Source of the DNA: Octopus bimaculoides
Lineage: Eukaryota
NCBI RefSeq assembly: GCF_001194135.2
Contig: NC_068997.1
Location: forward strand, 6,778,931-6,842,930
Direction of reading: 5' to 3'
DNA length: 64,000 nt
Under the pieces are notes generated by a model. It was not told the origin of the DNA, did no database searches, and saw only the letters and a list, made by a program, of their open reading frames with translations. A program made the translations under genes and the position numbers. Position 1 is the stretch's first letter. Each line of letters starts with the position of its first letter. Of this stretch, positions 514-48,907 are shown piece by piece.

Positions 514-568
514 GAATTGTTCAACGAAGGCTTCTGGTATTTCAATGGCTTTGAAACATTGAAATCAG
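514..568 (+). CDS. Gene A exon ([18 protein letters not shown]), phase 0-1
   Basis: tag|GAA...TCAG|gtaagt. 55 nt, the same length as paralog exon 47415-47469. Confidence 0.7.
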
Positions 569-3500
569 GTAAGTAAAAAGTTTTCATTTTCATAAAAATT
601 ATTAATTATAATTCGTTGCAGTTTCTAAACCCATCTCATGAAAATAAACGTTGAGCTCTTCTTAACAATTACGTTCGGTACGTCTATTTGCAAAACGTTA
701 ATTGCTCATTAATGAATTAATTAAAGATAAAATAATTTTATTCCTAACTAGCAAACACACCCGTCCTTTGGATAAGTTACTTTGCTGATATTTTTTCCAC
801 CAAATAATTGAACTACCGAGAAGGTTTATGAGTAGCACGGCAATCTATGTTTCCGATTAACCTAGGAACGGAAAATCGAATTGAAGGCTGGTTATTGTGA
901 AAGTTGTTGCCCTTTTATTGATCATAGAACATATAAATTTGCAAGCGATGCAAAGTAGAGCTTCTGAAGTGTTTTGGGAGTAGATTACGGGTAATGACCA
1001 CAAAATATAGTTGTTTAACATGAAAGCGAAATTTCTTGTCAGAAACACCCACATAAATGGTATAAGANNNNNNNNNNNNNNNNNNNNNNNNNNNNNNTCA
1101 ACAACAAAGGGAGTTATTTTTTCGGAGAGATAAGCTAACAAAAGCCTTTTTGTTCTGCCTTCCCACATAGTCTGCGCATAGACTAACAGTGAATGCTGCA
1201 TAAATTTTAATTGATATGGAGCTTTCTGAAAGATACGTATAACTTTCGCTAGTGGAAGCAAAACTCTTATTTGAAGACTGATTCTTTGGGACGAATCATA
1301 TGTGATTGTTTAAAAAAAGCTAGAACGACAATGCTAAAACGTATTTGAAACAATGGACAACAGTCGAAATATCATAATGGATGGGTAAATAAGCATCCTT
1401 AAAGTGAAACAACGCATTGGTAGGTAAATAAAGGTATCAACAAAAAGAAGAGAGGGAAGGAAGCATCACCTTTCAAGTAACTCAGAATAGGCAAAGGTAA
1501 ATGTTTAGTGCATGAGCATCCTTGGGACATAAGTAACGTGTGCGTAAAGTTTGGTGAAAATAGGTTGAGAATTGTGGAAATGTATGCATTATCATTATAC
1601 ACACACATACTGTGGTTTATATATATATACTACATTATCTGAGAACCCTAATAAGAGTATTTTAAACATGGATTGCTATGGTCCCGTAGAGGAAGGATTT
1701 ACAGGAAATCTTAACAACACAGCAATACTTGTTTTCTATTCTATGCTATCTTCTTTTTATATGTTACATGTTTAAATATACGTAAACTTCATCAATACGC
1801 CAACTCTTCTATCAGTATCCCGTACATACGCCAAGTCTTTCAATATCCTGTACATGTGTCAACTTCATCAGTACCCTAGACGTACAATATCATCGTGAAT
1901 ATATTCAGACATACATCAACACTGTCCCAGGCACACTGACAATCAGTGAAAAGAATTCAATATTTCTTTGACAAAAACAATAGAAAGTTGAATGAAATGG
2001 TTTGAAGTACTTCGTTTGCATCCTTCTATTTTTGTTAATTCGGATTCTTTAGGAGTTGATTTTACATCTCATCTCCTTATGGAATATTTAAATAAATTTT
2101 AGCTAACAGCAAGAACTAATATACCTTCGCGCGTTAACTTTGAAATCTGTGAGTTTGAAACAAGTTCAGCCTTATCTGACTCTCGTTTCCTTCCTCAAGA
2201 ACTCGATGAATTTACAAACTGAATAAATAGAAATGGGATCTGTATTACTTATCTCAAATTGATATATTATTATTTTTTTCATTAATATTTAGCAGAAGTA
2301 ACTGAGTGACTCAAGGTCCGAGAGTTTTGTGCTTTGGCACTTATCAAACTAGTTGCAGATCGAAGACCTGTGAGTTTATATAGCCGCTGATAAATATATT
2401 TCTCGGCCTGCAACTAGATTGATAAAGTGCCAACGCACGAAACTCTCGGACCTAGAGTCACTTTGTTACTTCTGCTAAATATTTATAAAAATATATATAG
2501 ACTCATATTTTGAGTTTTATTTTCCTGTTTGCATCAACATACCTATAACATTATTTTAAAATTCTATTTTAAAAGATAATTTCACTGAATTTTTCCTGGC
2601 CACTGTTTCGAGCGACTCTAATCCGTAAGTAATGTTGTTTCGTGTTTTTAGTTTATCTCTGATTAGTCATTTTCCCTGTTTAAACTAATGCGATTTGTTT
2701 GGAAACACTTTATACTTCTTTCATTCATAATAATATACCTTTATCGCACTACTTCCCTAAGTTAGCTCTTCAATGCTCCCCGAGTTATACATTTGATCAC
2801 TAAGTTCATTATTGTCTTATCCAAGCAGAGGAAATCGTTCACATCTCACGATCATTTACCCTTTAAACAATTTTATTTTCTTACACCAACGAATGTAGAG
2901 TTTTACACTTTTTTCCCCAACTCCGAAAGGATGAAAGGCAAAGTCGACCTCGGCGGAATTTGAACTCAGAACGTAAAGACGGACGAAACACCACTAAGCA
3001 TTTTGTCCGGCGTGCTAACAATTCTGCCTAACCACAATTAACGACAAAAAACAGTACCAACAACTAATTAGTGCCAGGCAGACTGAGCTGTTGTGAGGTC
3101 TTACCATAAATTATAAGCTACTTTTTATATACAGACAAGATGAAGACACTGGTCGGAAGATGTCATTGTTTTGAGTCAGTTATACTTGCAATGTACGTGG
3201 TAATTATGATTACTTTCGATTTCTTTTCAGATACAATTCTGGTCCAAGCCAAATTTCTGTGAACAGCTCGACTAAATTTCTGGCCATACATACATCACAG
3301 TTTAGTTTGTTGTTAGATTTGTGGCCACCACAGTCTGTTATTCATCCCTCTGCTAAAGTTGTCGTCAGCGATAAAAATAATGAACATGAAGAAAACATTC
3401 GGTTCGAACCAGAATGTTTCTTGTCTGGAAAACCTCAATTTGGAAGAGGAATGGTGTCACTCTCTTATTGTAACGGTTTAGTAAGTATTGAGTTTGTTGA

Positions 3501-6500
3501 TATTTTTTATTTTACTTTCAACGAATTCTTTCATGTATGGGTAAGAAACCCTGAGTCCGCCGGTGAAATTTTGTCCACGTTCAAATAAAACAAAATAAAA
3601 CAATAATTTGATATAAGTTGCTTGCTAAAGAATTTATAAAATTAAAGAGTAAGAAAATATCTAGAGAAAACAGTAACTAGCAGAAGGGAGTTAAAAGCTG
3701 ATTTAGATGAGGTTTTTAGAAAGGATTTCGCAGTAGTGACGGTGAGAATGGCGCTTTTGATTATTCCTTCGGCACTAAACACGAAGGTAACGTTGTCCAA
3801 GTTGAGAGACAGGTACAAAAGCCCGACGACACTTAAGCTGTTCGATGTTCCCGGATGGAAGAGATGTACCGTAGCAGCGGAACAAGGATATTGATATTGA
3901 TGAGCCGTGAGGAATGATATTTAATTTCGAGTGAATATCTATTATTTTCAACAGCACCTTCTTTACCAAACTGCAAATGGCAAATTAACAGAATTAGACA
4001 CTCCCGACTTCGATGCATACAAACTTTAGCGTCAGAAGTAGAGTGGTGTAAGAATCTAATTCCAGCTTCTAAAATAACGGATGCTGCGTCTAATCGTATG
4101 AGAAATAAGTTATGTAAAAGTGAGAATGAAATGGTAACGAAATCAAGTCTGTGATTTTGCATCTCGATTCATCGAGAGGCAAGTTCATGTCGTTAGTGAC
4201 GGTGTAGTCTGTTTTGGAATCGAGAGTCCGGTTATGAGTCTGTTTAGGTCCAAACCTCCAAGAACTGAGACGAAGTTAGAAGTGAGGTGACCAATCTCAC
4301 CTAAAAGTGCATCGATGGAAAGCTATCGGCTGATCGGCGCGCCTTGCTCCAGGCTGCATTTGACTAGGTTAGACCATCGGCTTTGTTGCTCCTTTTGCAA
4401 AGATTGGGTTCTCTGGCCAAACATCTCTGCTGCCAACATCAATGCTGATGATGCACAAATTTGCACCGAGGTTGCGACGTCTGCAACGATACAGAAACGC
4501 CGAATAGGTGCAGCCGTATTTGTCAAGTATGTTCTCCCGCAGCTCGTCTTTCCGACAGAACTGTCGACCAAATTTGGGCAGCTGAAATATTATCAGATGT
4601 TCATAATCCTCGACCAGTAGGGCAATGTCGTCAGTCATTCTACAAAGGGTTAGAGTGCTGATACGGGAATCCATTTAATTATTTAATTCATTATATTTCC
4701 CTTCTTCTAAATTCCGAGCCATGTATTAATGACAAAAACAACGCTTTGGGGAGTTGAATGGCAGAAACGCTACAGCACTGAATACGATAATGTATTTGTT
4801 TCATTCTAATGGTTTTGAGTTCAAATTCTAAACATAATGAGTTTGTCTTTCATCACTCTGACTATCAACTTTACATATTTTTTAGAAATATGAACCAATT
4901 AGAAAATTCATTATTATCATTAACACCATCTTGTACAGCGGAATCTGTTTGATTATCAGAGGGAAAGGTCACCAGGTAGAGGCAGGTGGTTATTTCTGTG
5001 TTTAATTATTGAACTTTTTCTGTGCTTTCTGAGCACTATTTGCCTGAACTTGGTCATTTCCTTTGCGTATGCAATAGCGCTTGCGTACACACACACACGC
5101 GTGCGCGCAATTTCATATCTTATTTCTTGTCATTTTAATGTCACTTTGTTGTCCTCGTAGGAAATAAGAAATTATTGTTGTTGTTGTTCATAGCGCCATA
5201 AGACAGAATTACTTTCTCGATTTAGCATATTTTACTGCCCTTACATCTCAGTAAGACCAATGATGATGTCACAAATTTTCTGTTCCACTCCATCATTCCT
5301 TAAACATCTTAGAATATCTATAGAACTTTCGACATGAAGCTGTCCCCGATTTTTACACAATTTATCAATAATCACTTCCTCCAGCACGGAATAATTGTTA
5401 CCAATGGCAGTGACTATCAAATAATTGCTCCTCGTTCAACTTGTGCTGAAAACATTTATTTGATTGCAAGACGGGCATCCAGTAATCTGATGCAACAAGG
5501 TAAATTAATATTTTACATAACTTTTGGAAAAGAGAGATCAGCAGCAATAAAATAAATTGATCTCGCTTCGTTGTAACGCGTGAAATTTGTCTCAGCTTGT
5601 GATCCATTACACGATTGAACATATTTTTTTATATTTCCTACATATAGATTCAATAGCCTAGTGAAATCTCATTCACTAAACTAAGGGTCTACCTATTATT
5701 ATTACTCTCGCTTCTGATGATGATTGTTGTGCTCATATCATTGTTGTGAAGCTCCGAGTCAAGGTACGCAAATTGGCGGGAGAACGATTTGGCGCGGCGA
5801 CCCACAACCTTTTTCATTAAATTCAAGTTTATTTTATTCGGTAGTTTTACCAACGTTAAAGACGCTATGGTAAGATTTCAGGCCGAATGAGCTGACCCAT
5901 TGACCTACGTGTCTTACAAAACATTGAAATAGTGGCCAAAAGAAGTGGAACACTGAAGGAAATAAAATTTTAATTTAAACACCACCCGGCGATAGAAATA
6001 AGGCATGAGACAATGAACGGAGATCAATTCGTTCTGAAAATAATGTTGAAAATATTTTTGTATAAATTTATCAGAGTAAGAAAGGACAGTGCTCAAAACC
6101 ACTGTTAGACCCGCCGATCCTTGTTGTAGGGAGATATCCAGAGATATGATGCCTTGTCCGAATGTTTCCCACAGAGTAGACTCCACAAAAGGCAACCAAA
6201 AGCCAAATGGTTAAACCGAGTGTGTTGGATGGTTTGAGTGAAGTCGATATGTCATTAGTTAGTACTGGGAAGCAAAGCAAGCCATAGTAGCGATAAAAAG
6301 CTAGGAGCTTGCAACTGTGCATTAGAGATTTGGGTATGTTATAGTGTGAGTTTTTGTCAATGAACTGAAAATCTTTCCTTTTAATCTAGAGTGTTTGTCC
6401 TGGTAGCAGCGGCTTCAAAGTTCTTCCAATAACATAGATACTACATTTTAAAAGAATTCAAGCATGTAATTAAAAATGTTTTAAGAGTTCGATTCTTTCA

Positions 6501-9500
6501 CTTTCGTTCCCCAAATAAGTAACAGGCTTCTGCAAAACAGTCATTGTTTCCGCAAAAGTTTAAAATAAGAATTTTTTTCTTTCTGACGAACCTTATTTCT
6601 TGACGGACCTAAATTTTTATTTTTTTGACAACATCTATTTCATAGAATCAAGTGAAATTTGCATATTTTTAACATAACGTTTACGCTATATATTTTAAAT
6701 TGTATTTTGTAATAATATACACGTTAACGCAAATGAAAACTCTTCTTGTTTTCCATACTAAATTTCACAGTTATCATCCTCTTGATCAAGAATGTTTTAG
6801 CGATATATACTTTAACGGTCCAGAAAAAAGAGCATTTCAGTCAACTTTAACACGGTTGATATAAGAAAATGAGAAGACCCTATAGTTCTGCCAACACCAT
6901 TTTTTCTTACAGAAATCTTTGAAGATAAAGGGTTTTTTTTGCTATTATGTTATGCTCAATAACAAAATATGAAAATGATTTCCAATGCTGAATTTTTTTT
7001 TTTTTTGTCACCCAAGTAAACAAAATGGAAGAAGCGAGAACAACACATGAAAAGTTAACGATAGAATTGGCTTTATTTTATGACCAGTCTGTATACAATT
7101 ACTTGGAAGAGAAAACGAACTCTAAGTCTTTGAAAGAAAAACTACAATATCTTGTGGCTGCATGGAATACGGTAAGTAAATAATCTAGAAATATATTTCG
7201 TATTTTTAAACACTATTTCCTTTCTGTATTGAAAACTGTTTGAAATACAAAGAGAAGCAAAAAATCTACCATTTCAGTATTTCTTCTGCATTTCTATGTT
7301 TCAGGTTCAATATGAGTTTAATAAAGAAAACCAACTGGGATATTCGATAAAACTAATCATTAAGTATATCAATATTTTTAGAGAAAATCCAGTAAGTCTC
7401 AATTTAATTCTGTATTCTGACAAAATACCTTCTTCCATGATATCGTTTAAAAAAATAATTTTAGAGAAAATTTGACGAAAACAGAACGACTGATAAAAAT
7501 AAAAGAAAATATTAAGATAGGAAAAAAACTAGGAATCGTACAAATGCTGTAGATATTAAGTTAAAATTAGCAAAGTTCTATCAGAATTGTTTTCATCTCT
7601 GTTCTAGAGTTTAATAAAACCTTGTACGATTAAACTGACATCTAATGAATACCGATTTTGATAAATCAAAGGATTCACATAACATAAAATCTCGATTGCG
7701 AGAAAACTGGTGAGGGACTACAACAATAAACAAAGAAAAGGTCGTGAATTGTTGAATAAATTCAATAACGGCGAGGAGAAGAAATCTCTTACATATTTTT
7801 GCCCTTCAGCAATAAGTACAATATGAAGTAGGTGTTTATATCATCGAGGGTAGAGATGTGAAGCCTTCCAAATACTTCCTGTTCAGCAGACAACTGTTGA
7901 AGGACAAAAGCTCGAAACGTTAGATTTTTTACTCTCCTCAGCGGTTTAATGTATTCGACATGCCACAAACTTTGCCAGAGGATTCATGACTAATAAAGAA
8001 CAAATCATCACACAAGATTGAATTATTTACTTCAGAGTAAAGACATAGATAGCTCAATTAGTATGAACCTATCAACCGATTGAAAGGTCGATAGGCTCAA
8101 TTAGTATGAACCTATCAACCAACTGAAAGGTCGATATTTCGTGTCCCGTCAACGATGCTGTCTTGTATTAACACTCGATGATAAATAACTCCTGTTAGCT
8201 AAGTCCACCGAGCTGTAAATATATACCATGGTCAAATATAGTTCACGACTGTAATGTGCTATCACTATATAACTGAAAAGTGTTTAGCAATACTAACTGT
8301 AATCCTTCCCATTGGAAAAGGAATCACACAGTCTGAAACCAGCGTCTTCAGTACACTTGGTCGTATTTGCCACTGGATTCGAGCTCTGTCTACATGTGAT
8401 GACAAGTCTGCAACATCCCATTCCGTAATATATTATTCAATGACAGACATCAAACATCAGATGGAAGGTAACTTAATCAAAATGACGGCTCCGATCATTG
8501 TAAAGACAGCGACAACGACGTGTCAAGCTTCCCTGTTGACAACCGAATTATGAATTCAATTATTTCCCCATTTCTTTGTGCCATTAATCAGTCCATTGTT
8601 TTTTCATATTGAACAAACATTTATCAGTTGTGATGATTACTTTCAGTCTTGGTACAAAACAAACAGTTTCGCGCTGGCTCTACGAAGTGTTTGTGTTTGG
8701 GCAGAGGAAAGGAAACTCAACTATGATCACATACACATCGTAACTAAGTGAGTTTTATTATCAATCTTTATTTAAATGAGAGTGAACAAAATCGAGCAAT
8801 AATTCGTTGTTGTAGATCGACAAATAATGAACAGCTTCATTCAGAAATATTCTTAATACATCAAAAGCATTTATGTTTTACGTTTTTTATTGGTTTCGCA
8901 TATTAGACTGCGGTCAAGCTGGGGGCACTGCCTTCCAAGAATATTGCTGATCATATCGGTCCAGGTAGACATTTCAGTTTGGTACCTATTTTATCAATTT
9001 GTATTTATTGGGTGGCTGAGTTATCTTTTAATGCGAAACTGGTTTTTATTGACCGTCTTGTGCCAAATGCATAAACGAAGAAACGGTGACACGTAGACAC
9101 TCATGCACGCGCACGGACGCACACAATACCTCTTTCTATTATTTACTCTGAACGAAAATTCTTTATAACGAAGTAATATGATAGCATTTTAAAGAAAACG
9201 TCAAAAGTCATTAACGTTTGTTTTTCGCTAAAAAATATAAATCTTTGTGCTGAGTCAAAAGATTTTGTGGACCGATCATGAGAAAGCCCAACATGGGAAA
9301 GCTGAATTTCAGAATACGGAAACTTGAAGAATCGAATGCTCAGGACACNNNNNNNNNNAGAAGACAACAAGAAGCAAAAGGACAGAATGAAGCGTTGGAC
9401 CTTACCTTGCCGACCGCAGCGGGGTACACGATCGCTCCTAATCAGAACACGTCTTTCTCGTAACGTCGCTGTTTTCTCACTGGCCCCACGTGCTAGCCTT

Positions 9501-15500: not shown

Positions 15501-16526
15501 GACGACTATAATAATAATAATAATAATAATAATAATGGTTTCAAACTTTGGTACAAGGCCAGCAAGTTTGGGGAAGGGGTTGAGTCGATTAAATCGACTC
15601 CAGTTTTCAACTGGTCCTTATTATATCGATCTCGAAAGGATGAAAGACAAAATTCCTTTCCAGTTCAAATAGTTATTATTACCATCCTTGCCACAACCAC
15701 TAACATTGTCTTCATCATCATTAATCGATCTTCCAGAATCATTAGTACGCCGGACAAAATGTTTAGCAGCATTTCGACCGTCTTTATGTTCTGAGTTAAA
15801 ATTCCGCCGAGGCCGACTTTGCCTTTCATCCTTTTTGAGAGTCGATAAATTAAGTACCAGTTGGACATTTGAGTAATCGACTTGCCCACTCCTCTGAAAT
15901 TGCTGGCTTTGTGCCAAAATAGGAAGCAATAAAACAATTATTATCATTATTACCATCCTCGCCACAACTACTACCACACTCATTATTATTCATATAATAA
16001 CATAATAATAATAAAATAATAATAATCATTTCTACTTTAAGTCCAAAGCCTGAAATTTGAGAGAGTGGGGTAGCTACACGATTATACTGATCCCAATGGT
16101 TTAGCTGTTAGAAACTTTTTCAAAACTTTAATTTAGAAACTGTTGAAAAAAAAAATGAGTGGAAATAGGGATTGAGTTTGCACACGTGTTTTATAGAAGC
16201 TGGTCCTCATTAATTAAATAACTATCTTAGCTGAAGACGACAAAGAAATGAAACCTTTGTTTTATATTTGCAGACCAGTTGGAACTGAATGGTGCAGAGG
16301 AAGCAGTGTCCGAGCCAAATTGTGTAATACCCATGTACGTACTATTATAATACTATATAAGTCATGTGTCGCTTATACTGTTTGACTAGCATATTATTAA
16401 ATGCCCTGTCGGGCTGAATAGCGAATAATCTCTGTACACTTAATTGCACAATATTTTCCGTGATCATCGATTTGATGATCAACTTCAAGTAATTCCAATT
16501 TAAAAATACTTATAAAAACCACATTT

Positions 16527-16567
<41 letters not shown>

Positions 16568-21593: not shown

Positions 21594-21635
<42 letters not shown>

Positions 21636-22859: not shown

Positions 22860-22925
<66 letters not shown>

Positions 22926-22934
22926 CTCTTTTAC

Positions 22935-26387: not shown

Positions 26388-26418
<31 letters not shown>

Positions 26419-29365: not shown

Positions 29366-29408
<43 letters not shown>

Positions 29409-30750: not shown

Positions 30751-30781
<31 letters not shown>

Positions 30782-31498: not shown

Positions 31499-31540
<42 letters not shown>

Positions 31541-37500: not shown

Positions 37501-38441
37501 TTGAAAATGTCTCCTGGCAACAAATTAATATCAAAATGGTTACCTTTTCAGCCAGCGTCGTAAATGCCTTGAGGAACATTGACTCCAGCCAGTCTTACGT
37601 GATCCCATCAATCCAGAACTTTCTTGAGTCATGTTACCACAGTGTGTCATTGCATCATGCGGGATACCAAGACTGGATACCAAAAGAAAAACAATATTCC
37701 CTTTAATCGTAACAAAGTAAATATTTTGTAGGGAGTTTCTTTGTTTTCAGGGTCCCGTGAAGTTGGGTTCGTCAAATATTTTGATTCCATAATGATGTGA
37801 GCAAAGCAAGACTCAAGAATATTGTACATTAATAGAAGAAGAACGATAAACAGGAAATGTATATGAGGCATGGTTTGTATCATCATCGCATTCACCGCTT
37901 TTGCTCCCAAAAAGCACTTTTTGACCTGGAAAACACATTCTTCTAACAACAAATATGTTTTTCACTTCTAAAGGGTCTGGAAACAAAGAAGCACTATATA
38001 TGGAATAAAATCGAAAGCTGAGGAAAGTAGTGATGATCTGCATCAGCAATAGTCGTTTTTAATTAATAAATTAATTAATCAATGGATAAGTTCACATGAG
38101 ATTTCAATGAGTTTAGTTTTTACGAAGAGGGAATTTAAAATTTTCAGATCTTGTTTCTCATCTGTGAATGAGACGTATAGAGTATATAAAAACCGAAAGG
38201 GAAAACGTCGTGATCATGATAACCACCTCATTACAATCTTAAACAACTTGAAAGCCTGTTTCGCGACCTGCTCAAAATAATATTAAAAAAAAATCTCTCT
38301 CAAATGATATTCTAGAACCTTTAAAAAAAAAAAAGGAGAAGCATTGGATAATGTGGTTGAATCTATACAATGTCTGATTAAATTACGGCATGACCAAGTC
38401 GATAATGGCTCTGATCATAAAGATTTACTCGGGGGTTGGAT

Positions 38442-38473
<32 letters not shown>

Positions 38474-40100
38474 AATCATCATCATCATCATCATCATCAA
38501 TACCACCAACAACAACGAACTTTCTTAAGCACATAATTAGAATGTAAAATAAGTGAATAAGTAAATAATTGCGCAATCATATGAATGAAAGTATTAAGTT
38601 TCAACTAAAATGGAGCCTGCGTTTATAATTCTGTCAACATACAATATTTGCCGATCTCAAGGCTTTTTCTTCCACATTAGTTAGGACATGACCAAGTATT
38701 CGTTATCAATGATATACAATTTTGGCCAACAAGCTCAGAAAGCATAATTGCGACAAAAATTACAGATTCAAGCAATTCCTAGTCAGAGTTATGTGAAAAT
38801 AAGGATTCGAATAACAGATGGAAAAAGATTTAGCAACCGAAATGTCACGTATGCTCAACAGAACCGGAAACGGGTAATTGTTTATGTCGTAGGAGTTAAA
38901 GAAAAATCTGTTTGCTCGGTGACAGGATGACAGTTAATTTAGTAAATATCACTGCGTGCTAAAAATGGGATTTTTATCGGATGAGTAATGATTGTCAGGA
39001 CAATTAAACCTAAATATTACTGAAGATATAACTAACTAGAAATAAATTTCATAGACCTTTTTGCCAGTAAAATTTTAAAATCATTGTAAAAATAATTCAA
39101 TTGTAAAAGTTATAATTTCGAGAATTTAGGTTCAGTCTTTTCAAACCGAAGCTACACTGCTGCAGATATCTGTCCATGGAAGTTATTTTGTAACAGTTTG
39201 CTTTTAAATGCCATTAATACTATTTAAAGAATATAGAACTTTTGGAAAACTTTTCTTGACCGCAAATTCTTTATTTTGTCCCACAGTCGTTATAATCCTT
39301 CTTAGAGTCATTATTGTGGGTTTTTTAAAAGGCTTTCCATCCCAACAAACCATAAACATTATCATTCTGTTTGTCCCGATATGTATTCGAGTGTTATGCG
39401 TTTTAGTAATTGTAACATTCGAAATCTTTAAACATAATGAAATAAATTCAAGTGTTACGCTTTCAACAACCTAAACTTTACAACAAAATCGAAGACAATG
39501 TCGAAGTCTTCAACATAATAAAATAATGTAATAAAAATCAGTAAATTTGTACAGCAAAAGAAAAAGAAGCCAAGTTTATAAGGAAATAGAATAAAATATC
39601 AAATATCAACAGAGACTGAGCTTTATCTTTTACTTGGCACACCAAATGATATCTGTTTAAGACTTGAGTTTTGAATAATAACATTTACAATTAAAAAAAT
39701 CGAAGCAGTCCTTCGGAGATGGTATCACAAGCGTGTAAATGAAAGTTGTTCTGTTTTAGCTATTCATTCGACAATTTCTGTAAAAATTTTTTATTTCCTC
39801 AATTTTTTTTAGCTCACACACAGACCTATACATACATACACAAACGTACATACGTGCACAGAAACACATACACATACTTACATACACAAATATACATACA
39901 TATATGTATATATAACTCTTCGAAACGCCAGTGTTATAATAGTGGCAGCTGATGAAGGATATGTTCTCTATGTGGCCTGTGTGTTTTTTGTACCTTGTTT
40001 ATAATTTTGTCCATGTTTTTTTGCAACGTCATGTACTCAGATATGCATCTATATATACATGTAGATGAAGGTATGTACATATATATGCATATACTCATAT

Positions 40101-40131
<31 letters not shown>

Positions 40132-40231
40132 NNNNNNNNNNNNNNNNNNNNNNNNNNNNNNNNNNNNNNNNNNNNNNNNNNNNNNNNNNNNNNNNNNNNN
40201 NNNNNNATATATATATATATATATACATATA

Positions 40232-40266
<35 letters not shown>

Positions 40267-40796
40267 TATATGTGAGTGTGTGTTCGAGTGTGCGGCTGTT
40301 CAACTCGATCGTGGACATAAAAGACAAGGTGTGTGTGTGTGCATGCGTGCGTGCGTGCGTGTGACCATGTGTTTCACTGTCCAGCTGAAAAAGTAAAGAA
40401 ATTTTTAAAATTACGGAAATTGCCGAATATATAGATAAAACATAAGGATTTTCATTTTCGTGATACTATCTCCGAAGGAATACCAATATCGAATGACTTG
40501 TATATTTATTATATATTCTTTATCTCAGCCCTCCAAACACAAAAGGGATGAAAACTTACTTATGTGCGAGCTCATGACTTAATGTATTCCGAGATAACCA
40601 CTCCCAAGATCTTGACAGCGAGCATTTTGCTGGTGTACAAGCTGCAGCTGACATTGAGAGTCCAAGTGCAAAACTACCCCGGACTCTGTGAAATAAAACG
40701 AGAAACAATCATTCATTAAATACAATCAAATGTTATTGATTGTCAGTAAAAATATTTGTCAACAAATACTAAAGAAAAACTCTATATCATGTCTCC

Positions 40797-40831
<35 letters not shown>

Positions 40832-41093
40832 GCTCTNNNNNNNNNNNNNNNNNNNNNNNNNNNNNNNNNNNNNNNNNNNNNNNNNNNNNNNNNNNNNNNN
40901 NNNNNNNNNNNNNNNNNNNNNNNNNNNNNNNNNNNNNNNNNNNNNNNNNNNNNNNNNNNNNNNNNNNNNNNNNNNNNNNNNNNNNNNNNNNNNNNNNNNN
41001 NNNNNNNNNNNNNNNNNNNNNNNNNNNNNNNNNNNNNNNNNNNNNNNNNNNNNNNNNNNNNNNNNNNNNNNNNNNNNNNNNNNNNNNNNNNNN

Positions 41094-41142
<49 letters not shown>

Positions 41143-44100
41143 ACCTGATATAATAATAGTCTATATTTGTTTATGGAAAAGGACACGGCAAAATGAATAA
41201 AACATTCGAAAGAGTCTTGCTGATGTCAAATCAATTTGTAAAAGAAATTCTTTAGGTGCTCGACTTAGTTTTTTTTTTTTACATAATTCTATTCACGAAG
41301 CTAGCATTTAACATGTTAAATACGTCCTTGTACGAATAAAAGCCGAGGGTGACCTTATCGGAATTTGATAAAACGTAACTCAATACGGCAGACATGTTGT
41401 CAGGCATTCTAACATTTCTACCGATCTACAGTCAAAAAGTAAGTTTTTGATGGAAGATTTTGTCCATATTAAGAGCAGTTGTTCTTTGAAAAAATATTGA
41501 GACATTGAGTATTTTATATTAAGCAATTAAAAATATTAACGTGATCAAAATATTAACGTGATCAAAAAAATTAACGTGATCAAAGCAAAAATTATATTTA
41601 CCCGCTCACAATATGTATATGGTCGGCAGACAGACTTCTCTGGTTTGCCCACGTGCAAGCCTTAGCCAATCTTTGTCTCAATGTCGACACACTTCCAATC
41701 TATTAAATACGAAGAATATTTCGAGGCGATATTTTGACTCGCTGACTTTTTAAAAAGAAAATGAAAATCAATAACCAATTAGCTTGAAACAAAATATTTG
41801 TAAATGTCTTTTTTTTTTGTATCGGATAGTTAAATTAAAACCAAATAGAAGCTCTCATTACAATGGTCACGAAATTGATTAAATTAATTAAACCATTGAA
41901 TAAAATACAAATTATTTCTCTATAGAGTCGGTTCTTCATAGCTATAATTACTTGCAGACATTATTTCAAAATGTACTAAGAGCTTTTGTAGTTGCACATT
42001 TCAAAGCCAGAATAAGACGTAAGAGATGATATTGAAGATTTTATTACCTGATTTGTCTTCCAAAAGAATATGTTAACTAATAAGAACTTCACAGAATAAT
42101 TTAATTCGTTTTCTTTCAGGAATTCATATTGAACCTGGAATATTAAACATTGAAGTTGATTTGAAAACAGAAAGAACAACGGATGTCTAGCAGTTACAAT
42201 CACTTGTTTTTACCGAAGTCATCTTAATTATATTTGTCATGGCTATATTTCGTCCCTTTTCAATCCTCACAGGGTCCCGTCCTTTAAGAAACACCGTTCT
42301 ACGCTAACTGCAATGTAGCATAGATTTACAAACGACCATATCTGCTAAGGTCCACTGCTAAAACAAAATATTCCCTACACCTGGCATGAAGTTACGTCAT
42401 TGACTCAAATTAATGACTTTCATAAGAATTCGTAATAGGACGGGGCTGAAATTCTACTTTTAAAATTGGGCTGTTAATAGTTTATTCTAGGAAAGCATCT
42501 TTAAATTTTTAGAAAACTCCGAAGTCGAATTTTAGAGCAGAAAATTAACAAAGTTTCAGAAAAGGCTTACGGTATTCCAAGTCGTAATAATGTATTGTAG
42601 TTTTTGGAGGAATGTTTTAGCTTGCATCACTTCTTCCATGTATTTATACATATATTCATCATATACAAGAGCCATCTCTATACTAAGTCTCTCCTTGGGT
42701 TGTTCAATACTTTGGACTTGTTTCAGAACTTCACATAAGAAACAGAAGTGGAAATACGAAAATAATATTTCTTGTCATCAATTAAACAAGTAATTTGGAC
42801 AAAATACACAAATATTTTAATATCATATTATTATATTATCATATACAATATTACCTCTATGTTCAAAATTTACTAAAACCTTTATAAACACTAAATTGTT
42901 TGTTGGCACTCCGTCGCTTACGACGTCGAGGGTTCCAGTTGATCCGATCAATGGAACAGCCAGCTCGTGAAATTAACGTGCAAGTGGCTGAGCACTCCAC
43001 AGACACGTGTACCCTTAACGTAGTTCTCGGGGATATTCAGCGTGACACAGTGTGACAAGGCTGACCCTTTGAATTACAGGCACAACAGAAACAGGAAGTA
43101 AGAGTGTGAGAAAGTTGTGGTGAAAGAGTACAGCAGGGTTCGCCACCATCCCCTGCCGGAGCCTCGTGGAGCTTTAGGTGTTTTCGCTCAATAAACACTC
43201 ACAGAGCCCGGTCTGGGAATCGAAACCGCGATCTTATGACCGCGAGTCCGCTGCCCTAACCACTGGGCCATTGCGCCTCCACAAACACTAAATGTTGTGT
43301 GTCAAATACTTATTCTTTTTGTCTGCATTTTTGTATGTCGGATCGTCTCTGTTTTCCAACCATGTTGGATTTCTCTGTTTTCCAACCGAACTGTTTTCTT
43401 GTTTGCGTATCAACCTTCAATTTGACTGGGTAACTTATCATTTCAATAAATGCCACGCATAAGACCACATTAATTGCAAGTCATTTTAATCTTAATGTCT
43501 TTGGCTACAGTATTTACAGACCTCTGAAATGCTGCAGCTTGAGCATTTTACAAATTTCAAGTTTCTTGTAGCTCATAATGAAATCTGACAAAATGAATCT
43601 GAGTTTGACTAAACCGAGATTCGATTTTGCCATTGTCAGTTTTAACTCGAGAAAAGATACCTAAAACAAATTAACTGTTTTATTAAACCTAATAATTTAG
43701 CTTACCATTCTCCCAAAGGACTCCGGATTGTCTGGTTGCAAGAAGATATTGACCTGGTCTACAGTTTGGTTCTGATGGTAATACTTGGTAATCAGTTCCA
43801 TTAGTAGTAATTATTCCACGCTAAAAGTTTTTGGAAAAGATGTTATCTAGTTGTATTAACAATAAAGTTTTGTTTCTGTAATATTATTGGTTGGCTATTT
43901 GTTTTAACACAGAAAAGCAATCAAAATTATCTAAATTATGGAAATTCTTAATAAGCACTCAACCGAACCCTGATTTCATATCGCTGAGGAAAATAGGCTG
44001 TAAAGGGAACACGCTAAATGCCACTCTTTAAAATTTAACTTTTGGTCCTGACCGAAGCCAAATTTAAAAACTGACACTCGTTCTTTCATTATTTTGTGAT

Positions 44101-47100
44101 CCATTCAGTCCATATCTAAAGGAAGGAATATCTAGATTGAGTAATTTGAGCAGCATTTTTCCTGTAGATTTCTCCATATTATTTTATCCTCTAAAAAGAA
44201 TCTTGTGCAGCAGACACGTTTTGCTAAGCAGTTAAGTCTAATCTGTTTCTGTGAATAAGAACAGCAGGTAATTTCAATATTGTAGGTAGTCGCTTTAAAG
44301 TAATATATCAAATCTAAGAAAACCTTGACCGAATAGATGCAACAAAGTAACATTGAAGAAAGGAAGCCAATAAAACGGGGTCGGATCAAGGCTTTCCCTT
44401 TCTCCCCTCTCTCTCCCTCTCTTTCTATATATGTATATGTGTGTGTGTGTGTGTGTTTGTGTGTGTATGTATGTGTGTGTGTGTAAATAAAATGGAGTTG
44501 CTACGTTTTGCTATACATTAATTCTGAAGAAGTAGTTGGTGGGAAAACTGGAAAACCATTTACTCTGAAATAAAAGGTGTTTATCTTATCTTTCAATTGG
44601 ATAAAGTCTGAGATACATCTTTTGCGAAATACTTATTTTCGAAATAAATATGGTTTGTTCAGTTAGACAGAATAGTTCACAAATACAATGACAATAAACT
44701 GTAGCATATCAGAATAATGATAAAAATTATGCTTACCAAACCATCACAAAAAGATAAAGATGCCATTCCATAACCATTTAGAGTTTTACCAAATACGTGA
44801 CATTTCGGAAGAAATGTGACATTTTGAACATGTTCTTCTTGACCGTCGAATATGATCACTTCACAGTTTGGATGGAAAACAGAACTTGGTTCCCAGAGCA
44901 AAAGATCGATGTGGAAGGATTCAGTATGAACGCTGAGAGTAGAGTTTGTGCGGTTAGCAAACGTAACTTCGTCTCTAAAATATAAAACGATGTTGAAAAT
45001 TAAAATGTGGTTGTGGCGACAAGGTTTATTAGTTGTCGTTATAATAACTGTGATTGTACAGAATTATAATATTATTCAATTAATTAATTACAATTATAAT
45101 TACGGAATAAGTGACAATAACATCGACCTTCCATGCATCCTATTTAGGTTACTGCTTAACTTTCCGCTAGTATTAATTCTTAATTAATATTCGTTGTAAA
45201 TAAGGCGATCAACTGGCAAAAACGTTAGCAAAATGCTGACCACTTTTCTTTCCCACCCCCACTCCGAGAAATAGTTGGCCTTGCGTCAATATTACTTTCG
45301 AATTTCGGTACAAGGCCAGCAATTTTAAGGGAGGGGTGAGTTGATGACATCCACCCCAGTGTTCAACTGGTACTTACTTTGTCAACCCCGAAAGGACGAA
45401 CAGCAAAGTCGGCCTCTACGGAATTTGAATTCAGAACAAAGACGAAATGCCGCAAAGCATTATTTCCGGTGTGTTAACGATTCTGCCAATTTGCAACCTT
45501 AAATTCCTTTTAATTAATATTAAGATTTTGCTCCGTAGTTTCTAATCTTATTCGAAGCAGTCTTAATCGTTCAGCTAACAAATATATCTATTTACTTGTA
45601 TCAGTGTCATGCATTTAAAAGCCCTATTCCTCAATTGGTCTTAATGAGTTTGAGGGAATGCAAATAGCAGCTGTGGCATTCATGTCAGCCTCTTCTAAGG
45701 CAGCCGTTCCCAATATTTCACTTTAGGTTCCTTCCGTGCTGCGTGGAAACGATATTTATTATCCAGAGTCTTTATCAAAGGACTCGTCGCTATTAACGAA
45801 AAAAAAAGCGGAATAACAAAGGTGCAATTCTAGATAAACGGTAGTTATAGTTGTGTGTGTGTGCGTGTATGAGTGTGTGTGAGTATGTGTGTATATATTC
45901 ATATATATATGCGTGTGTGTGTGTAATAGTGAGTTCTCTAATACATTTATCAAATGGAAGGAGCTTTCCAAATTCAGTGAGTTTTGTGTTACTTTATGAT
46001 ACTGTAGATTACCAGGTGGCCCGACTCGGTATTTCATCCCAGTGTAGTCTTCTCTTACAAACATCAATTTGTGCCAAATTCTCTCGACTTTTTTGAAAAA
46101 TATATTTTATGCCTTATTTTGAAATTGCAATCACCAGGTTAAAAAAAAAATGAATTAATAAGAAAATATATTTACTTTCGACTAAACATAAGAACTACAC
46201 AATATCCTTTGTTTTTATCACCTACAATGCTACTGAAATGAAACTTTAACTATTTCTAGTTGCAAATTATAAAATTCTATGACTTTCTGATGGAATCAAA
46301 CAAATTATCCTAATTTAGAAATTACGCTATTTTCTAAAAATCTAATTCCTTCTCAATTCTTCTTCTCTTACCTATCAAATTTCCTTGCTTGAGACCAGAA
46401 ATTCTTTTCAAAGAATTCAGTGCTACCTTGTTGGGAAATACTGCTATAAGGCATTCTTGACATAGGGTAAACTGACTGGTTCTGCTAAGAATTCACGGAG
46501 AAATTATCTACGCCCAACATTCTTTCGCCACATTTATTCAGGTGATGAATATTAATGGCATTCAGATAATTCAGCCCTATATACATTGTGCATGTAAATA
46601 ATAAACGGGGTCAGAAATTACTTTAAACCCTTAGATGATTGCAAAAAAAAAGGTTTGAAAATTTAAAGTCAGTTTACCTCAAATAATCAGCATTAATGGT
46701 AGCCCAGTGGAACTCGTTGAAACCATCTAAAACAGTGAAAAGAGAAATAGACTGATTGCTGGTGCAACAGGAATATATATAACGTGTTCTGTCTAATATG
46801 TCATAACTGATGTGGAGGCGCATTGGCCCAGTGGTTAGGGCAGCGGACTCGCGGTCATAGGATCGCGGTTTCGATTCCCAGACCGGGCGTTGTGAGTGTT
46901 TATTGAGTGAAAACACCTAAAGCTCCACGAGGCTCTGGCAGGGGGTGGTGGCGAACCCTGCTGTACTCTTTCACCACAACTTTCTCTCACTCTTTCTTCC
47001 TGTTTCTGTTGTGTCTGTATTTCAAAGGGCCAGCCTTGGCACACTGTGTCACGCTGAATATCGCCGAGAACTACGTTAAGGGTACACGTGTCTGTGGAGT

Positions 47101-48539
47101 GCTCAGCCACTTGCACGTTAATTTCACGTGCAGGCTGTTCCGTTGATCGGATCAACAGGAACCCTCGACGTCGTAAGCGACGGAGTGCCAACAACAACAA
47201 TCATAACTAATATCTATCTATCTACGTCCTCCTACCCAATTCAGGATCACCAACATATAGGTACACAATTTAGATTATTTGGAACAAAAAACGGAATTTC
47301 GACAAAAATTCGAAAATAAAAGTGTCTCTCGTTATTTCCTCACATTATGAAACTGAAAAAAGGCAACAGAATTTAAGAATATTGAAGTTAAATTACTGAA
47401 TATGTTAGACTTACCACGATGGAGAGCATCTTTCATTGTGTGGCAAGAGAAATCTTCAGAAGGAATTTTCTAGATACAAAAATAATCAGAAATTAGTTTC
47501 AGTTACTCGAATTGAAGGCATTTAAACAATAACACAATAGCAGCTCTAAAACAATTCTTCTCTATAGTCGGGAAAGTTGTCACTGATTAGTGAATCCTGT
47601 AAGGAATAGTAAACTGAGCAGATGATGGATGAAACTTGAATGTTCAAACTAATCTTTTTAATGAACAAAATGAACAGAAAAGAAAAAAGTGAAGTGTGAT
47701 GGAAAAACGATGTCACAATAAAGTAGTGAGTGCAATGTTATCGGATTTAATAAAGTAAACTTCACAAATCTAATTAGAAATACTTATACGTAGACAAGAC
47801 AGAATTACCTTAATAACGAAAAATTTCGAATCATTTAGACAAGTAGGAGAGATAACCGAGGACATGTTTCAGCCTTAACAGACATCCTCAGGGAATTATA
47901 CAATTCACCGTTCTTACTGAAGTAAGAGCCACTGAGTAGATATACAATACTATATACGAGTTTATATTTTGTGTCTGTGTGAGACATACTTATTATTATT
48001 CATTTAGAACAGAACCAAAGTTATATTCAGTCGGAAATCTATAATTTACGTTATTGTGAAATTACAAGTTACTCGTGTAAACACAGATGAATAAAAACAT
48101 TCGATATACTCAAGCACAAATGTCTGTATGTGAGGCTAACCTCTTATAATTATGATTTACGATAGTGAACATTATGACCAATAGCTATTTCTCACAACAG
48201 GGAACGTTTTTTTTTTTCTTTTTTGTTAATATTCCTCGAACAAAAAAAGACTGCGGAAGATTATCTCTTACCCAGTTATAGTCAAAAGAGGGTCCGGCCA
48301 AGATTTATATGTTAAGAAAACACTATTAACTACAGAGATGATTCAAAACTTTTCGTGATGTTTATAGCCGGATGGATGGGTTCAGGTAAGTCTCAATCCT
48401 GCGGCTTTTCTGTGCGCGACGGAGGGCAGGAGTCAGTGGTATGTTGCTAACTGTCAGGGCATCTAAAGTGGCATTCCAACAACTGACTTCACCATCCACG
48501 GAAGATTGTGCTGGCACTGCTACTGCTGTTGTTGTTGAA

Positions 48540-48574
<35 letters not shown>

Positions 48575-48907
48575 CTACGACGACGACGATGACGACGATG
48601 ACAGTGATGATGATGATGATGAACTGAGGAAGCGAGGTGCATGTATCTTATTTAAGGCTGCAGTGCAGATAAGCTGTCTCCAGCGATTACAGACAGCCAA
48701 ACGAGACTCTGCAAAACCTCATGAATCTAAATTAAATGCTGTAAAAGAAAAATTAATAAATTGACACAAATGGTTGCAGAAAAGCTTCAGAAACAATGAG
48801 CAACAAATAGTTTCGCATCTCAAAAATCTTACCTGGGGGGATGGATCTAGTTGCACATTGCAACACAAAGTCAGGAACATAAGACAAAATATGAGAAATG
48901 CTTTCAT
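25984..48907 (-). CDS. Gene B: secreted ADAMTS-like M12B metalloprotease with two PAN/Apple domains, paralog of gene A (19 exons, 805 codons traced from the ATG; terminal exon unresolved)
   Basis: Exons in transcript order: 48833-48907, 47415-47469, 46372-46426, 44737-44974, 43706-43820, 42571-42728, 42048-42134, 41602-41699, 40560-40685, 37544-37672, 35631-35737, 35309-35388, 35093-35197, 33283-33446, 32384-32444, 30920-31061, 29537-29770, 27976-28209, 25984-26135. They sum to 2415 nt with an open frame. Signal peptide MKAFLIFCLMFLTLCC; canonical HELAHNLGIPHD; GLMG Met-turn. Confidence 0.92.
27976..28209 (-). CDS. Gene B PAN/Apple domain exon 2
   Basis: 234 nt, phase 1-1; about 89% nt identity to 29537-29770 by manual alignment. 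Confidence 0.93.
29537..29770 (-). CDS. Gene B PAN/Apple domain exon 1
   Basis: 234 nt, phase 1-1; CANGC...CNSFEY...CDLS...WDFYE. Confidence 0.93.
30248..30740. repeat. Inverted pair of a roughly 150-190 bp TIR-bounded element containing a tRNA-like head
   Basis: 30249-30395 is the reverse complement of 30583-30740. Copy 1 has TIRs TACTCCGATTTAAAGCGACATTTA; internal TGGCTCAATCGG and GTGGGTTCGATTCC boxes. Confidence 0.75.
30920..31061 (-). CDS. Gene B exon, end of TSP1 and first part of Cys-rich domain (PCFNDSSNYFELVKQRASEVC...)
   Basis: tgcag|CCC TGT...A|gtaagt; phase 0-1; equivalent to the ADAMTS 'CP...R..QC' segment. Confidence 0.85.
31560..32032 (+). mobile_element. Mariner transposase 3' remnant with right TIR
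   Basis: LQDNARPHVA...SPDLAPTDYHVF motifs of the DD34D domain; frameshifted. Confidence 0.88.
32384..32444 (-). CDS. Gene B TSP1 exon 2 (PVNTEWCKGQSIRGQLCNVQ)
   Basis: 61 nt, homologous to 16274-16334; weak GAG acceptor. Confidence 0.85.
33283..33446 (-). CDS. Gene B TSP1 exon 1 (...[30 protein letters not shown])
   Basis: Textbook TSP1 motif; 164 nt. Confidence 0.94.
33590..34050 (-). mobile_element. Cluster of SINE fragments (family 2 at 33590-33730 and 33905-34050, another family between them)
   Basis: Core motifs shared with the 12529-12748 and 22935-23115 elements. Confidence 0.7.
35093..35197 (-). CDS. Gene B disintegrin-like exon 2 (VCGIQSC...DGLYCGQGK)
   Basis: 105 nt; |gtaagc donor. 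Confidence 0.88.
35309..35388 (-). CDS. Gene B disintegrin-like exon 1 (MYESSDVLCQQRFG...)
   Basis: 80 nt; |gtaagt donor. Confidence 0.88.
35631..35737 (-). CDS. Gene B exon (GKGKCLKT...GYGLLP)
   Basis: Homologous to 11894-11994. Confidence 0.88.
36560..37390. mobile_element. Two degenerate RTE-clade LINE fragments (minus about 36560-36900, plus about 36900-37390)
   Basis: KVYRTILLFVLLYGSGTW on the minus strand; EILMQ*NLRRFENIQRM...WTAATKDR on the plus strand. Confidence 0.7.
37544..37672 (-). CDS. Gene B exon with third zinc His and Met-turn (LGIPHD...GLMG...WSQCS)
   Basis: Completes the canonical HELAHNLGIPHD. Confidence 0.93.
39905..40100 (+). repeat. Dispersed repeat, second copy at about 61043-61240
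   Basis: Shared CTCTTCGAAACGCC...CTGATGAAG...ATGTTCTCTATGTGGC...CAGATATGCA, ending in (TA)n-like tracts. Confidence 0.75.
40560..40685 (-). CDS. Gene B zinc-site exon (...ALGLSMSAAACTPAKCSLS...TLSHELAH)
   Basis: HExxH motif; 126 nt; |gtaagt donor. Confidence 0.93.
41529..41584. repeat. 17-18-bp tandem repeat x3
   Basis: AAAATATTAACGTGATC repeated. Confidence 0.85.
41602..41699 (-). CDS. Gene B catalytic exon (...ACTWANQRSLSADHIHIVS)
   Basis: Homologous to 8647-8747. Confidence 0.87.
42048..42134 (-). CDS. Gene B catalytic exon (VQYEFLKENELNYSVKF...)
   Basis: 87 nt; homologous to 7305-7391. Confidence 0.9.
42571..42728 (-). CDS. Gene B catalytic-start exon (...LSIEMALVYDEYMY...TWNT)
   Basis: Homologous to 7017-7171. 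Confidence 0.9.
42897..43282 (-). mobile_element. Young tRNA-derived SINE (family 1)
   Basis: Head TGTGGAGGCGCAATGGCCCAGTGGTTAG...GGTTTCGATTCCC (A/B boxes), CAA-type tail, TSD AAACACTAAAT. Confidence 0.9.
43706..43820 (-). CDS. Gene B prodomain exon (RGIITTNGTDYQVLP...)
   Basis: 115 nt; homologous to 5385-5499. Confidence 0.9.
44737..44974 (-). CDS. Gene B prodomain exon (...PKCHVFGKTLNGYGMASLSFCDGL)
   Basis: Homologous to 3231-3480; |gtaagc donor. Confidence 0.9.
45290..45500 (-). mobile_element. SINE family 2
   Basis: Diverged copy of the same core and tail. Confidence 0.75.
46372..46426 (-). CDS. Gene B exon 3 (GSTEFFEKNFWSQARKFDR)
   Basis: Phase 1-2; TEFF shared with the gene A micro-exon; |gtaaga donor. 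Confidence 0.72.
46811..47200 (+). mobile_element. Young tRNA-derived SINE (family 1)
   Basis: Same element; (CAA)n tail; TSD TCATAACT at 46801 and 47201. Confidence 0.9.
47415..47469 (-). CDS. Gene B exon 2 (KIPSEDFSCHTMKDALHR)
   Basis: 55 nt, phase 0-1; tag| acceptor, |gtaagt donor. Confidence 0.72.
48538..48621. repeat. (GAT/GAC)n microsatellite
   Basis: Directly visible. Further (CAT)n at about 38445-38500 and 58512-58542, (GA)n at 58634-58723, and many (TA)n/(CA)n tracts. Confidence 0.95.
48833..48907 (-). CDS. Gene B exon 1, signal peptide (MKAFLIFCLMFLTLCCNVQLDPSPQ)
   Basis: ATG, basic residue, then hydrophobic core; CAG|gtaaga donor in phase 0, matching the next exon. Confidence 0.8.

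Follow-up and report, generated by a model that had tools for sequence, protein, structure and literature searches.

Two neighbouring octopus genes for short ADAMTS-like proteases with a pair of PAN domains nested in the cysteine-rich domain

Introduction

In canonical ADAMTS enzymes, exosite work is done by the spacer and by loops of CA, the first half of the cysteine-rich (Cys-rich) domain. For ADAMTS13 the disulfides of this region have been assigned as C450-C487, C483-C522 and C508-C527 (PMC6706451), and the V-loop of its CA subdomain (H476/S477/Q478, with G471-V474 at the base) forms exosite-2 for VWF (PMC4885070). Across M12B proteins this V-loop is the most length-variable part of the ADAM_CR fold (PMC4885070). 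Here we describe two neighbouring genes in a stretch of 64,000 nucleotides of Octopus bimaculoides DNA (contig NC_068997.1, positions 6,778,931 to 6,842,930 of the forward strand), which we call the window and within which all positions are counted. The two genes are tandemly duplicated and encode short secreted zinc metalloproteases of the M12B (ADAMTS) type. In both of them the alignment with ADAMTS13 places two complete PAN domains within the V-loop of CA, a subdomain with the ADAM_CR fold. The starting point was a prediction, made by a model from the sequence alone, of ADAMTS-like proteases with a tandem PAN/Apple pair inside the Cys-rich domain. The analysis reported below confirms the observation itself and upholds its interpretation in part.

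Results

Gene structure and domain order

The two genes, paralog A on the plus strand and paralog B on the minus strand, are convergent, about 45% identical and alike in their exon phases (Table 1). Paralog B, retrieved via a rough splice of minus-strand open reading frames (ORFs), is XP_014774988.1, a protein of 812 residues named 'ADAMTS 1'. Exact spliced mapping places it residue for residue on 20 minus-strand exons, from the ATG at 48907 to 24266, with every intron GT-AG; its precomputed Pfam matches are Reprolysin, TSP_1, PAN_1 and PAN_4. Paralog A is XP_014774985, of which exons 2-15 and 17-19 are readable in the window. Position 514, given in the original prediction as the beginning of the locus, is the first base of paralog A exon 2 and not the start of the gene, exon 1 lying beyond the window; the coordinates were otherwise right overall. 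The B ortholog of O. sinensis is colinear with XP_014774988.1, has 812 residues and is 94% identical, and that of O. vulgaris is likewise colinear. The syntenic O. sinensis locus (L004), which is free of gaps, holds an A ortholog of 20 exons with identical structure and, 2.3 kb downstream of it, a convergent B gene.

The O. bimaculoides assembly has gaps in both genes. Those in paralog B (25660-25669, 26419-26492, 40132-40206 and 40837-41093) are all intronic, and so are the gaps 1068-1097, 9349-9358 and 12890-13352 of paralog A. Exon 16 and the terminal exon of A were searched for in the readable sequence of the window and not found; blastn against O. sinensis puts both of them in further gaps (Table 1). 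Because these gaps hide exons 16 and 20, the public models of paralog A are damaged. XP_014774985.1 bypasses exon 16 by the use of a shifted donor (16338) and continues past the donor of exon 19 as far as 21540, and the later NCBI models split the one gene into XP_014774985.2 (569 aa) and LOC128249706 (295 aa).

The order of domains is signal peptide (called by eye, as for a secreted-type protein), propeptide, Reprolysin, disintegrin-like domain, one TSP1 and the CA half of the Cys-rich domain with the two PANs, followed by the stop. Pfam identifies the M12B catalytic domain (Reprolysin, E-value (E) 3.5e-15) and the central TSP1 (TSP_1, E 4.7e-9), the latter with phmmer matches to TSP1 structures. 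The zinc motif of paralog B is canonical, HELAHNLGIPHD, with a GLMG Met-turn downstream. The disintegrin-like domain was recognized on the predicted structure, where Foldseek aligned about 320 columns with ADAMTS1, ADAMTS4 and ADAMTS5 at template modelling (TM) scores of 0.63-0.70 relative to the target. The AlphaFold2 model of the full-length protein has a predicted local distance difference test (pLDDT) score of 74.9, and its top Foldseek matches are the ADAMTS13 MDTCS fragment, ADAMTS1, ADAMTS4 and ADAMTS5.

At the C-terminus, the protein ends 9-10 residues past the C527 equivalent in both paralogs. The CB subdomain, which reads FGCD..CGVCGGD..C in relatives, is absent from both, so that the Cys-rich domain (CA + CB) is incomplete. 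There is no spacer either: the sequence ends after CA, Pfam gives no spacer match, and further repeats are absent. The short C-terminal tail is kept in three Octopus species and in the transcript contig L001 described below. With the stop after C527 and neither CB nor spacer, two defining features of ADAMTS proteins are missing, and we therefore regard the two proteins as truncated ADAMTS-like proteases; the name ADAMTS, taken in its full sense, is not borne out.

The PAN modules

Two PAN exons of 234 nt and phase 1-1 had been predicted in each paralog, and the Pfam calls confirm them, as does the predicted fold. PAN_1 covers two stretches of paralog B (E 6.9e-19, 67.9 bits, for a cut-off of 21.4), and the profile is also found in the A ortholog (E 2.8e-18, 66.0 bits) and in L001 (51.1 bits). 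The domain search thus returned PAN_1, Reprolysin and TSP_1 as anticipated, while Pep_M12B_propep stayed below threshold, though the pro-region aligns with that of relatives. All four PAN exons of the window and both modules of L001 have a four-cysteine core, C-x3-C-x5-C-x11-C, the pairing of which is only assumed. The six cysteines of Apple type, with an outer disulfide linking the termini, are not present, each module having four. Of the label PAN/Apple, the first half is consequently upheld by the PAN_1 profile and the four-cysteine core and the second half has to be dropped. The AlphaFold2 model of CA with the PANs (residues 548-812, pLDDT 72.6) matched in Foldseek the apple domains of factor XI and prekallikrein, MIC4, SML-2, plasminogen and the N domain of HGF.

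Both PANs are present in both genes in the RefSeq models from three Octopus species. Logan contig L001 (SRR25158146), an intron-less sequence of 1022 nt and about 40% identity, reads in a single frame TSP1, N-terminal CA half, PAN, PAN, C-terminal CA half, short tail and stop. It is transcript-level evidence for the splicing-in of both PAN modules.

Purifying selection acts on the PAN exons. In the comparison of O. bimaculoides with O. sinensis, the ratio of non-synonymous to synonymous substitution rates (dN/dS) is 0.22 for those of A, where the remainder of the gene gives 0.15, and 0.22 for those of B. The two modules of B differ from one another: PAN1 has accumulated 2 synonymous and 7 non-synonymous changes (dN/dS 0.83) and PAN2 6 synonymous and 1 non-synonymous change (dN/dS 0.035), an asymmetry of Fisher p = 0.04 on small counts.

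Site of the insertion

A construct from which the PANs had been deleted aligned with ADAMTS13 DTCS at an E of ~2e-13. In this alignment CEVSC corresponds to C483/C487, DGSPC to C508 and CIRGTC to C522/C527, and the cysteine of QRASEVC falls within a few residues of C450, a placement that the profile confirms in part. A profile of CA only matches ADAMTS13 weakly (E 0.17), and the mapping relies mainly on the TSP1-anchored alignment and the conserved cysteines. The insertion point then lies between the equivalents of G479 and D480, 3-7 residues ahead of the C483 equivalent and within the C450-C487 loop. According to the original prediction this loop is closed by a disulfide; the bond is real (PMC6706451), and the site maps next to residues 476-480. 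In an alignment with ten PAN-less mollusc relatives, the PAN pair stands out as one clean block of 162 inserted columns, with ..TGxxxxxxx before it and GxCEVxC after it.

As for the exons on either side, the PAN exons were expected in both paralogs between the exon with the first cysteine of the Cys-rich domain and that with CxxxC..DGxxC..CxxGxC. This arrangement is seen directly in B. In A, exon 16 is hidden in a gap, and the upstream half of the arrangement is read from the O. sinensis ortholog.

Distribution of the architecture

To assess the distribution, HMMER was run exhaustively against 1.84 billion cluster representatives (50% identity clusters), and the best 150 matches were taken and their domains checked locally. 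Among the matches listed, the ADAMTS core is combined with PAN only in two Octopus clusters and in the L001 fragment, and the combination was not found in bivalve and other relatives. The proposal of a lineage-specific subfamily agrees with this, the architecture being confined to octopods (plus L001) among these matches. Whether it had been described before was left undecided in the prediction. Both proteins and their PAN Pfam matches are already in RefSeq and UniProt, so that the architecture is catalogued; the literature search found no paper on the ADAMTS and PAN combination or citing these accessions, and a search on octopus salivary gland and ADAMTS found nothing relevant.

Origin of the PAN pair

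In A, in B and in O. sinensis, the limits of the modules are the limits of exons, and both flanking introns are of phase 1, as is characteristic of exon shuffling. The intron that would have received the modules can still be seen. A PAN-less paralog of octopus, studied at its O. vulgaris locus (L002), agrees with A and B in its phase pattern over 18 exons. Precisely where A and B carry the modules, between ..GRAYGGKG and GYNDDCDVHC, it has a phase-1 intron; no PAN relic was found at this locus. The phase-1 junction that was predicted to reappear on removal of the PAN exons is thus matched by a real intron. On the donor side, each PAN of a multi-PAN gene of Argonauta hians is one phase 1-1 exon (234, 234, 231 and 258 nt), and the closest PAN sequences among the matches listed belong to octopod multi-PAN/Sushi proteins, with up to 45-47% identity. 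Since recipient intron, donor module and symmetric phases are all documented, the pair very probably arose by classical exon shuffling.

Both ADAMTS-like PANs best match one and the same PAN subtype, which suggests that one exon was captured and then duplicated in tandem. Capture of a PANa-PANb pair as a unit from the multi-PAN genes was also considered and is less likely for the same reason. B PAN2 shares 82% protein identity with B PAN1 and is nearer to it than to A PAN2, and the two exons with short intron flanks form a direct repeat of 300 nt (Table 1), which points to gene conversion or re-duplication. The synonymous divergence (dS) between the two B copies (0.19-0.25) exceeds that between O. 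bimaculoides and O. sinensis (0.10-0.14), and the event is therefore older than the split of these species.

Other features of the window

A short interspersed repeat, seen in six-frame translations only, occurs in several introns and in both orientations (2867-3028, 12501-12802 and 15624-15989, with similar sequence near 9146-9694). A second repeated element lies in two B introns and downstream of the genes (42866-43198, 46838-47200 (-) and 56611-56960 (+)); its ORFs read VFIERKHL.L....GDGGEPCCTL.. and ..STEQPAREINVQV.EHSTDTCTLN... In the stretches 62008-62220 (+) and 62943-63215 (+), an isolated ORF (GFIGSRYGYRPLPYTIEEQHFDHILQEA..) has no Pfam match, and a fragment near it, with a weak match to the winged helix-turn-helix profile HTH_29 (E 0.006), looks like a transposase remnant. 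Pfam gave nothing usable on assorted ORFs from introns and from the 49-64 kb part. Past 48907, neither ADAMTS-like nor PAN sequence was found, and no tRNA genes were found anywhere in the window. Microsatellites of (TG/CA)n, (TA)n-like and (GA/CT)n type are abundant and often stand beside gaps, for example at 29258-29514, 31382-31574 and 40103-40465; further sites are 51215-51721, 58403-58876, 60637-61333 and 62280-62830.

Table 1. Positions in the window of the exons of paralogs A and B, of the gaps that hide two A exons and of the direct repeat in B
Feature	Position	Strand	Basis
Paralog B gene XP_014774988.1, 20 exons, stop in exon 20	24266..48907	-	spliced mapping
B exon 1, signal peptide (MKAFLIFCLMFLTLCCNVQL)	48833..48907	-	spliced mapping
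B exon 2	47415..47469	-	spliced mapping
B exon 3	46678..46726	-	spliced mapping
B exon 4, propeptide	44737..44974	-	spliced mapping
B exon 5, propeptide end; without RxxR furin motif	43706..43820	-	spliced mapping
B exon 6, Reprolysin domain start	42571..42728	-	Pfam + spliced mapping
B exon 7	42048..42134	-	spliced mapping
B exon 8	41602..41699	-	spliced mapping
B exon 9, terminal HELAH = first half of zinc motif	40560..40685	-	spliced mapping
B exon 10, N-LGIPHD completing HELAHNLGIPHD; Met-turn (GLMG)	37544..37672	-	spliced mapping
B exon 11, disintegrin-like domain	35631..35737	-	spliced mapping + Foldseek
B exon 12, disintegrin-like domain	35309..35388	-	spliced mapping
B exon 13, disintegrin-like domain	35093..35197	-	spliced mapping
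B exon 14, TSP1 first part	33283..33446	-	Pfam + spliced mapping
B exon 15, TSP1 end	32384..32444	-	spliced mapping
B exon 16, 142 nt, phase 0->1, N-terminal CA half, QRASEVC (~ADAMTS13 C450)	30920..31061	-	mapping + alignment
B exon 17 = PAN1, 234 nt, phase 1-1; skipped in A0A0L8H6J5	29537..29770	-	Pfam + mapping
B exon 18 = PAN2, 234 nt, phase 1-1	27976..28209	-	Pfam + mapping
B exon 19, 152 nt, phase 1->0, CEVSC..DGSPC..CIRGTC (~ADAMTS13 C483, C487, C508, C522, C527)	25984..26135	-	
B exon 20, KFENQTFSG then stop	24266..24295	-	tail conserved in O. sinensis, O. vulgaris
Direct repeat of 300 nt, copy 1 (B PAN2 exon + short intron flanks), 90% identical to copy 2	27965..28264		
Direct repeat of 300 nt, copy 2 (B PAN1 exon + short intron flanks)	29526..29825		
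Paralog A gene XP_014774985, readable part	514..21387	+	mapping + O. sinensis comparison
A exon 2	514..568	+	
A exon 3	2576..2624	+	
A exon 4, propeptide	3231..3480	+	
A exon 5, no RxxR in the pro-region	5385..5499	+	
A exon 6, no RxxR in the pro-region	7017..7171	+	
A exon 7	7305..7391	+	
A exon 8	8647..8747	+	
A exon 9, terminal HEIAH	10306..10431	+	
A exon 10, G-IDIPHD; zinc motif HEIAHGIDIPHD, Asp at conserved Gly	11120..11245	+	
A exon 11	11894..11994	+	
A exon 12	13760..13839	+	
A exon 13	14005..14109	+	
A exon 14, TSP1	14695..14858	+	
A exon 15, TSP1 end	16274..16334	+	
Assembly gap hiding A exon 16 (O. sinensis: 142 nt, phase 0->1, ..IIRQRASERC..)	16712..17518	.	blastn vs O. sinensis L004
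A exon 17 = PAN1, 234 nt, phase 1-1	17957..18190	+	
A exon 18 = PAN2, 234 nt, phase 1-1	19568..19801	+	
A exon 19, CEVEC..DGTPC..CLRGKC	21236..21387	+	
Assembly gap hiding A exon 20 (O. sinensis: 33 nt, NFGTKGYANV then stop)	22363..22859	.	blastn vs O. sinensis L004

Discussion

We have practically no doubt that the nested architecture is real, and the explanation that we prefer overall, which joins this architecture to an origin by shuffling and to a mechanism for the PAN pair, seems on balance probable. According to it, a PAN exon from the octopod multi-PAN/Sushi family would have entered a phase-1 intron that a short ADAMTS-like gene already possessed and would then have been duplicated in tandem, all of this prior to the divergence of A, B and the L001 gene; PAN2 of B would later have been overwritten by, or re-duplicated from, PAN1. 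In the protein, the PAN pair would project from the V-loop as an added ligand-binding module for a protein or a glycan. It would direct the protease to a substrate or to a location in matrix or mucus and would take over the exosite work of spacer and CA loops in proteins that have no spacer. We suggest tentatively, and with slightly less than even confidence, that the pair is a binding exosite or targeting module of this kind.

The pair might instead have a role other than that of a substrate exosite, such as anchoring the protease to glycans of mucus or extracellular matrix, dimerisation, or masking of the V-loop for latency. PAN functions are indeed diverse. MIC4 of Toxoplasma and SML-2 of Sarcocystis are tandem-PAN lectins and apple 4 of factor XI serves in dimerisation, and the structural neighbours of the octopus modules comprise the galactose-binding SML-2 and MIC4, the heparin-binding N domain of HGF and the kininogen-binding apples of factor XI and prekallikrein; the absence of a furin site moreover suggests unusual regulation. 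The position in the exosite loop of ADAMTS13 slightly favours substrate recognition and nothing else separates these roles; we find such a different role doubtful. A narrower version of the exosite idea is quite unlikely to hold in full, and we mention it as a speculation: the pair could be an exosite of lectin type by which a minimal ADAMTS scaffold, without spacer or furin site, is retargeted to substrates that bear glycans, mucins or prey matrix for example, in an octopod-specific function possibly of saliva/venom or skin mucus, where the recently duplicated, diverging and skippable B PAN1 might tune ligand specificity.

Several points weigh against the explanation that we prefer. The zinc motif of paralog A, HEIAHGIDIPHD, has an Asp in place of the Gly of HExxHxxGxxH, a residue that is normally invariant. 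This is not an assembly error, because the same change is found in the O. sinensis ortholog, and paralog A may be catalytically atypical or impaired. An RxxR furin motif was looked for in the pro-regions of A, of B and of the PAN-less octopus paralog and found in none of them; the bivalve relatives carry RKRR or RSRR at the pro-catalytic junction. The model of CA with the PANs is of moderate confidence, and the C-terminal half of CA is its weakest part. Codon 34 of L001, in TSP1, reads TGA in frame at a place where relatives code for Arg (CGA/AGA); sequencing error, polymorphism and pseudogene are possible reasons for it. Restriction to one lineage is concluded from the best 150 matches to 50%-identity clusters and not from direct genome scans. 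The exosite role of the pair is purely something that we infer, the V-loop location making it more plausible. Finally, the UniProt entry A0A0L8H6J5 (734 aa) is XP_014774988.1 minus exactly exon 17, which encodes PAN1.

Judging from this last protein, splicing may alter how many PAN modules are included, and B PAN1 may be a cassette exon. It could then be argued that the PAN exons in general are alternatively spliced cassettes giving products with 0, 1 or 2 PANs, the two-PAN form being one isoform and possibly a minor one. With both exons of 234 nt and phase 1-1, any combination would stay in frame, and B PAN1, the module that is skipped in A0A0L8H6J5, is also the one under relaxed constraint, within the limits set by the small counts. 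However, both PANs are found in the RefSeq models of both genes in three Octopus species, the independent transcript contig L001 holds both, and both PAN exons of A are under purifying selection, and we consider this alternative unlikely. That the PAN exons are an annotation or assembly artefact, either a separate nested gene or exons misplaced by scaffolding around gaps, is suggested by the many gaps of the region and the visibly damaged NCBI models of paralog A but is essentially refuted and in our judgement exceedingly improbable, as the gap-free O. sinensis assembly has the same exon order and phases, the critical junctions are free of gaps (exon 16-PAN1-PAN2 in B and PAN1-PAN2-exon 19 in A), one spliced transcript, L001, unites all parts in a single frame, the intron phases fit exactly and the PAN exons are under purifying selection.

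The preferred explanation, with PAN exons truly captured by a protease gene, offers a clean protostome case of classical exon shuffling, in which 1-1 modules went into an intron of matching phase, with the donor family and the vacant recipient site both recognisable to this day. Such nesting is rare as well, two whole domains standing inside another one exactly at the substrate-exosite loop of ADAMTS13. If the PAN pair does set the choice of substrate, these genes would amount to a natural experiment in which ADAMTS specificity has been re-engineered via the V-loop, and would point to an octopod-specific extracellular proteolytic function. The nested architecture has no bearing on a long-standing open question, and the proteins are already public.

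Among the known systems that come close is the ADAMTS family with ADAMTS13 (structures 6QIG and 3GHM) and ADAMTS1, ADAMTS4 and ADAMTS5. The octopus proteins share with it the Reprolysin domain with HExxHxxGxxHD (in B), the disintegrin-like domain and the central TSP1, and with ADAMTS13 also the CA cysteines equivalent to C450, C483, C487, C508, C522 and C527, the insertion falling at the V-loop that serves as VWF exosite-2. They differ in having no CB, spacer, further TSP1, CUB or PLAC modules and no furin site, in their two PANs inside CA and, for paralog A, in the Gly to Asp change of the zinc motif. The PAN-less octopod paralog (CAI9719167.1 in O. vulgaris, XP_014788797.1 in O. bimaculoides) shares with A and B its exon phases, its truncated C-terminus without spacer and the lack of RxxR, and has the phase-1 intron at the site; unlike A and B, it has neither PAN exons nor a relic of them and keeps a few residues of CB (VFGCDSRF...). 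In the bivalve relatives (Mytilus coruscus CAC5405361.1, Magallana gigas XP_011415206.3 and Pecten XP_033759955.1), the CA signature QRASETC...GxCEVxC...PDGTPC is retained, with about 30% identity over the pro, catalytic, disintegrin-like, TSP1 and CA regions. Their V-loop, in contrast, is short; they have a spacer, a complete CB and additional C-terminal modules as well as the RKRR/RSRR sites, and they lack PAN.

That this loop varies in length and tolerates insertions is also seen in the group-A ADAM_CR of P-III snake venom metalloproteinases and ADAMs, where the V-loop is long (PMC4885070). Their insert amounts to about 27 residues of helix and hairpins, whereas that of the octopus proteins comprises about 156 residues, two entire domains that fold on their own. 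Factor XI and prekallikrein, plasminogen and HGF resemble the octopus proteins as extracellular proteases that use PANs as binding modules, and the predicted fold of the modules matches theirs. They are, however, serine proteases or homologues of these, with PANs that are N-terminal and not nested, and Apple domains have 6 Cys where the octopus modules have the 4-Cys core only. The nearest PANs themselves, among the matches listed, are those of the octopod multi-PAN/Sushi proteins (O. sinensis LOC118764742, Argonauta hians GAB1601772.1), in which one PAN is likewise one 1-1 exon of about 234 nt; having no protease domain, these are a likely donor family and not whole-protein homologues. A last likeness comes from outside the animals. 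WP_340642378.1 of Photobacterium damselae is a StcE-like metalloprotease with five PAN_1 repeats that are about 32% identical to the octopus pair (E 2.7e-35). It is bacterial and of another protease family, and its PANs lie toward the C-terminus and are not nested. Convergence may explain this similarity, as may horizontal transfer between a marine bacterium and an animal host, and the bacterial enzyme is an independent combination of a protease with PAN modules.

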